A stretch of DNA of 63,785 nt, filler included, from Dicyema japonicum (Eukaryota; Animalia; Dicyemida), in the NCBI GenBank assembly GCA_011109175.1. It is 10 parts of 10 records of this genome, joined end to end, with 100 filler letters (N's around TTAATTAATTAA, not from the genome) between each part and the next. Parts side by side here need not be neighbours in the genome. Positions count along the whole stretch, not along the records: positions 54,074 to 56,588 come from RDEW01000360.1; 9 more parts are not named here. One strand, 5' to 3'. Position numbers and translations under genes: made by a program. The notes beneath the pieces are model-generated. The model had not been told where the DNA came from. It did not search any database and saw only the letters and a program-made list of their open reading frames with translations. Shown here in pieces: positions 2,760-56,588 of the stretch (its first letter is position 1; each line of letters opens with the position of its first letter).

Positions 2760-4935
2760 CTAGAACTAATTAATCAGGTGACCCCGGCTTCTCTGAGGAG
2801 GGTCCTCATCTTTGCCCGGTGCTGCTCCCTAGTCCGACACAATTTCTATGATGGCGCGGTGGTGGAGTTTTAGGGCCTGTGGGCCCGTTGTTCCTTCTCA
2901 AGATTTCTTTAAATGAGGCGATGGATGTTCATATCGGTCCTGTAGTGCTTTCCGAAATCTTTCTTGAGTTTTTTCGATTTTTTCACGGTTCGTTTCACTG
3001 ACAAACCCTCCCACGCCCCACAAGCATAACTAATGGAGGGATTCGAGGTATTGCCGGTAGATTGATTGGCGTGCGGGGAAGCTGATCCATTGTTGTATTT
3101 TCGGAGGAACACTTTTAAGATTTCAGTTTCTTCGTGCAGCTAGTTGTAACATTTTCAACTTGTTGGGAGAAACACATATGACTATCGTAAGTCACGCCGA
3201 GGATTTTCTGGATTTTTTAAAGGGATTTCCATGTTGTTTAGATATAAGTTCACCACTATTTTCCCAAGTTCCTTGCTGAAGTCAGAAGCGTAGTGACTGA
3301 TTTTTCAGGACTCGTTGATAGTCGATTTATCGAAAGCCAACTTTCGAGATTGTGGAGGTAGTTCTGCAGTTTTGAACTTCCCGTGTTAACCTCACGGCTC
3401 CGAGTAGCAATCACAATATCGTCAGCGTATGATAGTACGATTGAGTCTTTGTCGTTTGGCAGCGGGAGGTCCGATAAGAATAGGTTAAAAAGAGCTGGCG
3501 AGAGGGGTGAGCCTTGAGGGACTCCGTTTGGAAAATATCTTGACATCGATCTTGTATTGTTTTGTTGGATCCTGCCTCTTCGGCCGCTGAGGAAGTTAGC
3601 TAGCCACTTTTTCAGCTTTGGGTGAATTTCACTAAGGTATATTTTCCTGGTCAGTATTTTCCTGGGAACGGAGTCAAAAGCCTTATGGATATCCACTGAG
3701 CACATAACCGTTTTTTGGTTATACGGTTTGGCAGATAGTCCACCTGAGATGAAGTTCGTTAAAGTGACAAGGTGCGAAGTGGTTGATTTGCCACATTTAA
3801 ATCCATGTTGAAAATCCAAATCCGGGAGATATTGTTTGATGTGGTTGAGTATAAGTTTTTCCAGAACTTTGGATAGGACACAGAGGAGAGATATTGGCCT
3901 GTAGGACGCCGGATTGTCTTTTGGTCTCCCTGGTTTTAGAATAGGACGAATGTGTGCCATTTTCCACAATGTTGGTATTGAGTTGTTGTTTATAGAGAAG
4001 TTGTAAATTTGACAGAGAGCTGATAATGCCACCTGACCTAGGTTTTTCACCAGAATAGTTGGAATTCCGTCAGGACCACAAGAGCCAGTGTTTCTCAAAT
4101 TTCTGATAGTCTGAGACACCTCCTCATGGGTGAGGATTATCATGTCCCGACATCTTTCAACGACTTCAAGCATGGTCCATCATATTTCCTGTGCGGGATG
4201 TTGCTGATCCCAGCGTAGAACTTTATCAATTTGTTGGTGAAGGGAGCCGCATTATCCTCACCCGATTTAAATCTCTCCGGGTTTGCGAATCTTCTTAAGG
4301 ATGCCCATACTTTTGTTAGAGGGACCTCCGCATTTAGTCCCCTGGCGAACTTTTCAGCCCTCCCGTACCGTTTGTCCTTTGCAGGCTGTACTATGTCTTT
4401 ATTCAGTAGTCTGATCCGATGCCGGTTGTCCCTTGTAAGATGTAAGCGACCTTTCAGTGAGTTCCGTTCCTCGATTAGGGGTAGAATCCTCGAAGGAAAT
4501 TTTCTTACTGGTTTTGGATAAATTTTCCTCATTCTTAAGAATGATTTTCGTCCATTCAAGATTGTTTGGTTGAAATGCTTGAGGGCGTTGTCGACCGAGT
4601 CGAAACCGTGTACATCAAAGTTAATCAGTGCTTTTGTCAATGTAGTGGGCAAAATTGATCCAATCTGCGTGCTTGTAGTCGTATTTCAGGTTGGGGAACC
4701 CCTTTCTGAGGGGCGATTTGGCTTGGACTTTTATAATTAACAGATTGTGATCGCTCCGTAGATCGTAGGTAACGCCCCATTTGACCAGAGGTGCGAGGTT
4801 GGAAAGAACAAAGGTCAGATCGGGGGAGGTAGGCTTGTCCTTGGTATTGTATGGAGTCCTTGTGTGCAGTGAGGGATCGTTCATGATTACAAGGTTGTCC
4901 AGTAGCTCGAGAATAGACTTACCACGGGAGTCAGC
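2760..4935 (-). mobile_element. Jockey/I-like LINE ORF2 (APE end plus RT), frameshifted
   Basis: SPDLTF/SDHN endonuclease motifs; RT motifs YRPISLL, KAFDSV, GVPQGSPLSP and YADD in ORF 3256-4173. Confidence 0.9.
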
Positions 4936-54073: not shown

Positions 54074-56588
54074 AAAAAGAGTTACTTCTACTTAGGCCTG
54101 TACTTGGGAGTGAAGGGGAATTCTTTGGGTTTCTCCTGAAGGAGGTATGCGACTCTAGGGTCGCTACTAGGTGTGAGGACGGGAGGGTGTTAGGAGGACG
54201 ATTAATATTTAAATAAAATAGAGCCTCCCTCAGAGAGAGCGTTACTGTGAGTGCGACCTAAGAGCACGACAATGGAAGAAGTCTCCCTCACATAGAAGAG
54301 AGTTAGAGAGTTAGGCCAGACTACAGTGGTCGTGGGATGATGTTGATTCTCTTGACTTACTACGTGAGAAAGAATCAACTACTACGGTGAGGAACGATCT
54401 CTTATGTGATAGATTCTCATCTAAGATTCTTAGTAATTTATAACATTTATAAGATAGAGAATCTATACTATTTAAATCTATATATATGATAATCATTTTA
54501 CTATCATTATCATATATACTTTGGTGTAGTGATCGGGCCAGCGAGGAAAGAGGCTCCAATCACAATAAGTTTGTTCTAGTTGACGTGGAGACTATAGGTG
54601 GAGTGCAGCCCCATATCGATGAGTTCACATCCACGGATGTTTACGTAATCGATATAGTGTAGAAGAACACTTCTCCCCATAGATTCCTAAGAGCAGTCTC
54701 CACTACTCCGTAGGCTGTTCGCCAGTCTCTTATACCGTAGAGATCTATTATAAATTAAATAAAAATTAAAAAGAGTTACTTCTACTTAGGCCTGTACTTG
54801 GGAGTGAAGGGGAATTCTTTGGGTTTCTCCTGAAGGAGGTATGCGACTTTAGGGTCGCTACTGGGAGTGAGGACGGGAGGGTGTGAGGAGGACGATTAAT
54901 ATTTAAATAAAATAGAGCCTCCCTCAGAGAGAGTGTTACTGTGAGTGCGACCTAAGAGCACGACAATGGAAGAAGNGGAAATCTATTGTACTGTGGTATA
55001 AACACCATCTAAAGTGTCGTTTAGGTCGTTGGATGGTGTGTAGAGTCGCTCTGATGGGCGAAGGGCGGTAATTGGGATTACGGTCCTGAGGTATGGAGAA
55101 GTCTCTATCGGTGAGGACGGGTGTTAGGAGGACGACTAATACAAAGAGATAAACCCCTCTCTAAGAATACACTACCTGTGAGTGCGACCTAAGAGCACGA
55201 CCGAGGTGAAGAGAACTCACAGCCAGAGAGAGTTGGAAGAGTGGCCAGACTAACTGTGGTCTCAGGGGATGTAGATCCTCTTGACTGATATTCTTGAGAA
55301 AGGATCTACTACTACGGCGTAGGTTTCTACCTTATAGGTTAGATTCTACATTAAGATTATGCGTAATTGTAAACACATATAGATGTAGAATCTATACTAC
55401 TTTATATGTAACAACAATTTTGTTGTTACATACGATGGTGTTGTGGTGTCCGGGCCAAGGAGGTCGGGGGACTCGAGGGACACATTGAGGTAGTACTGAT
55501 GGACGGTGAGTCTACATGAGAGAGTGCAGCCCCTACTATCGATGAGTGTCGTATACACGTATACCGTCACGTAATCGATGTAGATGACGCATAACACCAT
55601 ACACTCTCCCACATAGTCCTCTAACAACCGACTCACCTGCTCTGTAGTCTGTTCGACAATGTAGTAGAGGACTATTATACTAAAATATAATATAGATTTC
55701 CATAATTAGGAAATCTATTCTACTGTGGTATAAACACCATCTAAAGTGTTGTTTAGGTCGTTGGATGGTGTGTAGAGTCGCTCTGATGGGCGAAGGGCGG
55801 TAATTGGGATTACGGTCCTGAGGTATGGAGAAGTCTCTATCGGTGAGGACGGGTGTTAGGAGGACGACTAATACAAAGAGATAAACCCCTCTCTAAGAAT
55901 ACACTACCTGTGAGTGCGACCTAAGAGCACGACNGGACGAACGGTATGCGGAGGAGGATATTCTGTGAGAGAAACCATTCTAGGACAAGTCTTTACTTCA
56001 TAGATAGCCGCAGAGTTACCTAGGGAAGAGTAAGGAAGAAGTCTTCATAAGATGGAGGAGCGTTCTACCTTATTTTAAAAATAGGTTTGTAGTAGTATCG
56101 GGGTATATGCAGGTGATGTAGATCCTCTTGATTGATCGTCGTGAGAAAGGATATACTACTACAGTATAGCTCTACGGTAGGCCTACTGTTAGAAGTCTAC
56201 TTCTAAGTATAGATTCTCCTTTAAGATTCTTGTTAATTATAAATAACTATAGAGAGAATCTATTATATAGTTCTTTATATATAATAATACTTTTATTATT
56301 ATATATAATACAGTTGGTGTGGTGTCCGGGCAAGGGAGGTAGTGAGTTAAGATTCTTGTTAATTATAAATAACTATAGAGAGAATCTATTATATAGTTCT
56401 TTATATATAATAATACTTTTATTATTATATATAATACATTGAGTGTGGTGTCCGGGCAAGGGAGGTGGTGAGACTGGTCGGACACATTTAGGTGGTTCTG
56501 GTGGACGGAGGGTCTAACACTATCGAGCGCAGCCCCTTATCGATGCGACTCGTATCGCACACGTCCGGATAAGAATCATAATCGATAG
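54074..56588. repeat. Three divergent ~700-nt structured non-coding repeat units (tandem or circular)
   Basis: Unit 1 has period 694, unit 2 period 732 and unit 3 is partial; they share motifs and covarying stems. Confidence 0.75.

Follow-up and report, generated by a model that had tools for sequence, protein, structure and literature searches.

Head-to-tail units at the locus

The window, that is, the whole stretch of DNA analysed, comprises 63,785 nucleotides from Dicyema japonicum (assembly GCA_011109175.1), and we describe here positions 54074–56588 (record RDEW01000360.1). A single n at 54976 and another at 55934 divide this segment into three pieces, the first two of which restart on themselves, as an earlier note on this DNA had described. 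The unit 1 period is 694 nt, with 54074–54281 recurring at 54768–54975 (208 nt, 5 substitutions), and that of unit 2 is 732 nt, with 54977–55201 recurring at 55709–55933 (225 nt, 2 substitutions). Unit 3 (55935–56588) is partial, in line with its earlier description as a partial third variant, and contains a 126-nt tandem duplication (56221–56472; 4 substitutions between copies) which that description did not mention and which may be either genuine or two variants stitched together. Read as circles, the units are collinear, with an identity of 71–73% over aligned letters and 65% by column (MAFFT); each piece carries at most 1.3 periods and is without unique flanking DNA. The units and repeats are as follows (X1 is the public sequencing run treated below).

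54074–54767, unstranded: unit 1, one full period, putative circle (repeat comparison; junction 54767/54768 spanned by X1 contig 3, 54696–54841)
54768–54975, unstranded: unit 1 terminal redundancy, 208 nt with 5 substitutions relative to the first copy (repeat comparison)
54977–55708, unstranded: unit 2, one full period, putative circle (repeat comparison; junction 55708/55709 spanned by X1 contig 7, 55631–55933)
55709–55933, unstranded: unit 2 terminal redundancy, 225 nt with 2 substitutions (repeat comparison)
55935–56588, unstranded: unit 3, partial family member, 528 nt when the duplication is left out (X1 contig 8 lies on 55935–56147 with 4 differences and reaches 71 nt upstream)
56221–56472, unstranded: 126-nt tandem duplication in unit 3, 4 substitutions (spans part of hairpin D, hairpin E and the start of hairpin F)

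The longest stretch identical in units 1 and 2 is a 26-nt block (54245–54270 on the + strand, equal to 55176–55201). Piece 2 ends precisely with this block, and piece 1 runs 11 nt past it; branching of the assembly graph among family members would give such ends. The single-n joins fit SSPACE-type scaffolding. SSPACE and four mate-pair libraries were used for the Dicyema japonicum assembly (PMC6736024). Much of the difference in length is explained by an additional 11-bp hairpin in unit 2 (55002–55039), without a clear counterpart in unit 1.

Conserved helices and motifs across units

We compared the potential base pairing of the three units, and at least ten helices recur in identical order, so that the description of strongly diverged units with a conserved order of motifs stands (~65–73% identity). 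The order begins with the GAGGACG domain, the 26-nt block, helix C, the ACTACR/TGTRGT domain, hairpin F and domain G, and continues with the GNC-TGTTC-GNC hairpin, an AT-rich tract and the Y-GAA-GGGS/SUCC-U-GA-R loop-helix. All five stems named in the earlier note were located at the positions it had given; one of these, the ATCGAT stem, is essentially invariant and therefore carries little information on covariation. The conserved features are listed by their unit 1 positions.

54110–54142, +: Y-GAA-GGGS...SUCC-U-GA-R helix with internal loop (unit 2, 55058–55092; read by eye, missed by MAFFT)
54173–54229, +: GAGGACG domain, comprising a helix whose GACG bulge is conserved and a hairpin whose loop is GGAGGA (hand-drawn; unit 2, 55111–55159; unit 3, from 55935)
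54342–54379, +: helix C, whose inner motif is CUUGA/UGAG-AA (covariation with unit 2, 55271–55309, and unit 3, 56119–56155)
54381–54530, +: domain that ACTACR/TGTRGT closes in each of the three units (unit 2, 55311–55447; unit 3, 56158–56323)
54529–54563, +: hairpin F, GTGAT/ATCAC versus GTGTC/GACAC (unit 2, 55446–55483; unit 3, 56448–56485)
54585–54703, +: nested domain G (unit 2, 55505–55637)
54679–54748, +: helix M, 54679–89/54738–48 (unit 2, 55613–23/55665–75, 11 perfect pairs)
54713–54723, +: small GNC-TGTTC-GNC hairpin, in which one pair is compensatory (unit 2, 55647–55657)
54749–54775, +: A/T-rich tract within a GTAGAG/TTCTAC helix, across the unit 1 junction (AT-rich unit 2 counterpart at ~55676–55712)

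In unit 1, the ACTACR/TGTRGT domain contains hairpin D (54409–54466) and the AT-rich hairpin E (54481–54518). Domain G is closed by a long-range helix (54585–92/54696–703) with 3 compensatory pairs relative to unit 2, and its interior comprises a helix (54600–05/54668–73), an invariant unpaired CAGCCCC, a TATCGAT/ATCGATA helix and a terminal hairpin with a CACG loop, in which 3 of the 5 stem pairs are swapped. Both variable pairs of the Y-GAA-GGGS/SUCC-U-GA-R helix covary between units 1 and 2, and the helix has a bulged U. We take the layout of its GAA/GA internal loop (54110–54142; 55058–55092) to recall that of VS stem-loop I, the substrate loop of the Varkud ribozyme. Helix M cuts across domain G and has strands in common with two further conserved helices, and would therefore form a pseudoknot or an alternative fold. 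The CAGACTA motif is invariant, and its possible long-range pairing with TAGKCTG (54317–54323/54711–54717 with one mismatch; 55246–55252/55645–55651, perfect) would preclude the TGTTC hairpin, and is thus another candidate switch.

Compensatory changes and strand

Since the helices were partly hand-drawn and so open to selection bias, unbiased tests were applied. The RNAalifold consensus energy for units 1 and 2 gave z = −6.5 on the + strand and −9.9 on the − strand relative to column shuffles, and the consensus contained 31 pairs changed on both sides, compared with 17.1 ± 3.5 in column shuffles. A test of single-unit predicted structures was significant only from unit 2 to unit 1 (p ~ 0.016, both strands). 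A test of Watson–Crick helices, run after it, set energy-free helices of at least 7 bp in one unit and checked them in another: 37 of the 51 doubly changed pairs were still Watson–Crick, against a strand-neutral null of 18.6 ± 3.5 (p ~ 3e-4), where pairs were tallied in both directions, so that the independent count is about half. Cut-offs of 6 and 8 bp agreed. The covariation is real, though it comes from three sequences, and the compensatory changes noted earlier are borne out. Paired columns were not more conserved than unpaired columns.

Among one-sided changes in the Watson–Crick helices, G·T defects numbered 24 and A·C defects 28, and a second strand-neutral defect count gave 9 versus 8, the same as in shuffles; three tests for a strand bias of folding found none. 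With G·T and A·C defects at equal frequency, neither strand is established as the one that folds, and the earlier argument from G-T pairs to one single-stranded fold does not hold. The + strand has a G skew, predicted loops rich in purines and the more stable fold.

Coding capacity, known RNAs and relatives

The longest ORF has 82 aa and none is common to the units, which agrees with the earlier judgement that there is no credible ORF. Six-frame tblastn against 120 mitochondrial loci revealed no similarity to a mitochondrial protein or pseudogene (best E 0.23). ARAGORN found no tRNA in the units; in mitochondrial mode it found nothing in unit 1, and its calls in units 2 and 3 differ in strand and anticodon. 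Profile HMMs built from 86 metazoan mitochondrial LSU and 35 mitochondrial SSU rRNA sequences, which detected the E. coli rRNA controls at E 6e-19 and 6e-8, left the units undetected (E at least 1.9 for LSU and at least 4.9 for SSU). An rRNA identity, considered when short motifs resembled 23S domain V by eye, was rejected, as the HMMs were negative and local alignment to E. coli 16S/23S was no better than that of shuffles. The small GNC-TGTTC-GNC hairpin (54713–54723; 55647–55657) resembles the A-loop of large-subunit rRNA, with rRNA profile tests negative; its flanks are bacterial-like in unit 1 and invertebrate-mitochondrial-like in unit 2.

The Rfam search suggested in the earlier note, which covered the complete set of 4,227 families with a cut-off of E ≤ 10, returned no family, only chance miRNA/sRNA hairpin matches far under the gathering score. 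Neither CUGANGA nor CUGANNA occurs on either strand of the circularised units, confirming the reported absence of a canonical hammerhead core, and none of the core patterns for hammerhead, hairpin, HDV, group I or group II ribozymes is common to the units. A group I intron or lariat-capping ribozyme was also rejected: CAGACTA alone is R-like, P, Q and S are unmatched, and no Rfam match was found. Begomovirus deltasatellites and CRESS-DNA satellites are ~700 nt, non-coding and carry stem-loops and an A-rich tract; the units are alike in all of these, but lack the exact NANTATTAC nonanucleotide, have near-matches to it that are not conserved at a stem apex, and match no viral contig, and this identity was rejected as well. 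Relatives were found neither by pattern scans of viral, metagenome and prokaryotic genome contigs nor by blastn of plasmids and phages.

The family in a public sequencing run

We investigated the family in X1, a public run of 2019 in which 27% of the sampled words were present. A total of 186 X1 contigs match the stretch at 80% or more, across all identity bands and with depths of ~100–650 each; the summed depth at helix C is ~3,000–4,700, which corresponds to roughly 10–15 variants. X1 contigs span both head-to-tail junctions, which are therefore not artefacts of this assembly, and fit circles and tandem arrays equally. Two further runs of the same sample (X2 and X3) contain essentially no family sequence; they are plausibly long-insert libraries that miss small circles. 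No RNA run was among those containing the sampled words, a weak negative, and the RNA element proposed in the earlier note thus gains no evidence of RNA.

Some X1 contigs look mosaic, following one unit and then another, with joints such as 54387 to 55326, 54506 to 56295 and 55311 to 56210; among the joints listed, none skips or repeats exactly 126 nt, the length of the duplication at 56221–56472. The mosaics may reflect recombination between circles at conserved motifs, or many intermediate variants. Among the X1 variants listed, and as anecdotal evidence, some are compatible with the fold, such as 55537 T>C, which turns G·T into C-G, and one, 55217 T>C, would break a pair unless its partner also changes.

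Discussion

Gene-less circles are already known in dicyemids, which are parasites of octopus. According to Zverkov et al. 2019 (PMC6543705), Dicyema sp. has 3,220 circular contigs above 500 bp, with a median of 702 bp, that are non-coding besides mitochondrial genes and pseudogenes; their lengths show a 10.44-bp periodicity, only three families exceed ten members, and the non-coding circles have 12–20-bp motifs in common with mitochondrial circles. The authors propose selfish circles bearing maintenance signals. Like the non-coding 'long' circles of Dicyema (Noto et al. 2003; PMC6543705), some of which form families of more than ten members, the units are 600–800 bp, have no protein domain, are poor in low complexity, are well covered, are assembled as contigs with terminal repeats and have short motifs in common among themselves. 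By size, form and non-coding status, the units thus probably belong to this gene-less 600–800-bp class. The 694- and 732-nt periods differ by 3.6 helical turns, which is not a whole number. Dicyemid mitochondrial minicircles and pseudogene circles share with the units a size range (344–1605 bp) and hairpin-rich non-coding DNA (Watanabe 1999; PMC6543705); the units, unlike these, revealed no gene or pseudogene for a protein, an rRNA or a tRNA. The label 'undescribed' in the earlier note consequently fails for the class, thousands of non-coding 600–800-bp Dicyema circles being published, and stands, as far as literature searches found, for the conserved whole-circle fold: the papers on these circles, as far as consulted, report only 12–20-bp motifs in mostly unrelated sequences, and no whole-length fold or covariation.

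We tentatively favour, as a reading that falls a little short of probable, selfish DNA circles that lack genes and whose fold, formed on a single-stranded intermediate of replication, serves as a cis signal read by the host's replication or segregation machinery for minicircles. The DNA minicircles of the earlier note accordingly lead, and circularity itself, by any mechanism, is likely. The locus would hold three distinct small circles of double-stranded DNA, one of 694 bp, one of 732 bp and a third in part; the assembly would run round each circle once plus 0.3 turn, and the scaffolder would have joined them at motifs in common. These circles would come from a family of which one sample contains many divergent members, and which most probably is that of the dicyemid gene-less 600–800-bp circles; they would encode nothing and persist as cis-only selfish replicons, relying on the host's apparatus for maintaining dicyemid (mitochondrial-type) minicircles. 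Selection would act on the fold of a single strand in strand-displacement, rolling-circle copying or cruciform extrusion, and the conserved helices, mutually exclusive ones included, would be origin, priming or segregation signals. The helices are mostly pure Watson–Crick and neither strand has an excess of G·T, which is what folding of both strands, or of DNA, would give. Against a DNA origin, the multi-branched, long-range and crossing helices and the covarying GAA/GA loop look more like RNA; against DNA circles stand the 3.6-turn offset, contigs that fit tandem arrays too, and a link to dicyemids made by size and assembly style, together with the presence of such circles in chromosomal DNA as well, which was reportedly found by Noto (2003).

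These RNA-like features are what a doubtful, though not negligible, alternative would build on, namely that the units are the DNA stage of a Varkud-satellite-like RNA satellite, in which multimer transcripts are cut and ligated into circular RNA by an unrecognised ribozyme and a helper reverse transcriptase remakes the circle. The Varkud satellite plasmid of Neurospora has 881 nt (PMC6765202) and resembles the units in being sub-kilobase, non-coding and elaborately folded, and in the circular DNA that the units likely also have. The whole-unit fold, with its multiway junctions, crossing or alternative helices and covarying GAA/GA loop, fits such a satellite, as do the G-skew, purine-rich predicted loops and stabler fold of the + strand. 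The hairpin, however, has no VS-type kissing loop, no Rfam ribozyme appears at E ≤ 10 and no known ribozyme core is common to the units, G·U tolerance is not strand-specific, no RNA run is among the sequence-bearing runs (again a weak negative), and no helper reverse transcriptase is known. Its stronger form, an animal (possibly mitochondrial) retro-satellite with an RNA of ~700 nt that carries an undescribed class of self-cleaving ribozyme, as a counterpart of Varkud, is more doubtful again, and literature searches returned nothing connecting dicyemids with ribozymes. A retrozyme, as invoked in the earlier note, is not supported. Non-LTR retrozymes are ~170–400 nt and carry a type I hammerhead (PMC7229834); like those of animals, the units are head-to-tail and non-coding and may yield circles, but they are too long, at ~700 nt, and have no hammerhead, the CUGANGA core being absent from both strands.

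Chromosomal head-to-tail arrays or dispersed copies of a structured satellite or non-autonomous element, with circles as developmental excision products rather than replicons, are unlikely, less so than the retro-satellite and more so than the general RNA-satellite reading. Copies of each unit differ by 2–5 substitutions, which is tandem-like, and the junction-bridging X1 contigs fit arrays equally. Chromatin elimination and chromosome-derived circles have been reported in dicyemids (cited in PMC6543705). The scaffold, however, shows neither a flank nor a terminal inverted repeat, a target-site duplication or an LTR, and no piece attains two full periods, and the family is missing from two other runs of X1's sample. 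Ordinary satellites homogenise, whereas here members diverged by ~30% keep covarying long-range helices in pieces of at most 1.3 periods, and in this the earlier contrast with an ordinary satellite is upheld. A host-functional structured RNA gene on each circle, with many paralogues (for example a guide-type RNA, an RNA like that of RNase P/MRP, or part of a mitochondrial rRNA in extremely diverged form), is improbable: circles that encode rrnL, rrnS and tRNAs, with paralogous and pseudogene circles, exist in Dicyema (PMC6543705), and short LSU look-alikes such as the A-loop-like GNC-UGUUC-GNC hairpin occur in the units, but the mitochondrial LSU/SSU HMMs and Rfam are negative, the mitochondrial tRNA calls are inconsistent, and at least 10 variants 20–30% apart in one sample are unlike an essential rRNA. 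It is most improbable of all that the stems are mutational by-products, in which template switching or gene conversion has homogenised inverted repeats of non-functional circles while the fold is under no selection. The mostly perfect Watson–Crick, strand-symmetric helices, paired columns no more conserved than others and mostly non-significant single-sequence structure tests would suit this; helices of 5–8 bp spanning 70–150 nt nevertheless covary, and unpaired motifs are invariant across the unit, and template switching is disfavoured because it would not preserve short long-range covarying helices or invariant unpaired motifs.

Gene-less dicyemid circles have been known for two decades, and the question has been whether they are fragments cast off by chromosomes or elements that replicate. 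A family that keeps a dozen covarying helices at ~30% divergence is under selection, a point in favour of an inherited replicon over developmental waste. The outcome would be a structured DNA origin shared with animal mitochondrial genomes that are fragmented or, with lower probability, a catalytic RNA of a new kind; the retro-satellite, if true, would explain the thousands of gene-less dicyemid circles.

A minor feature of the conserved 26-nt block is its 10-mer CCTAAGAGCA (54257–54266), which has a second copy in unit 1 only, at 54686–54695.
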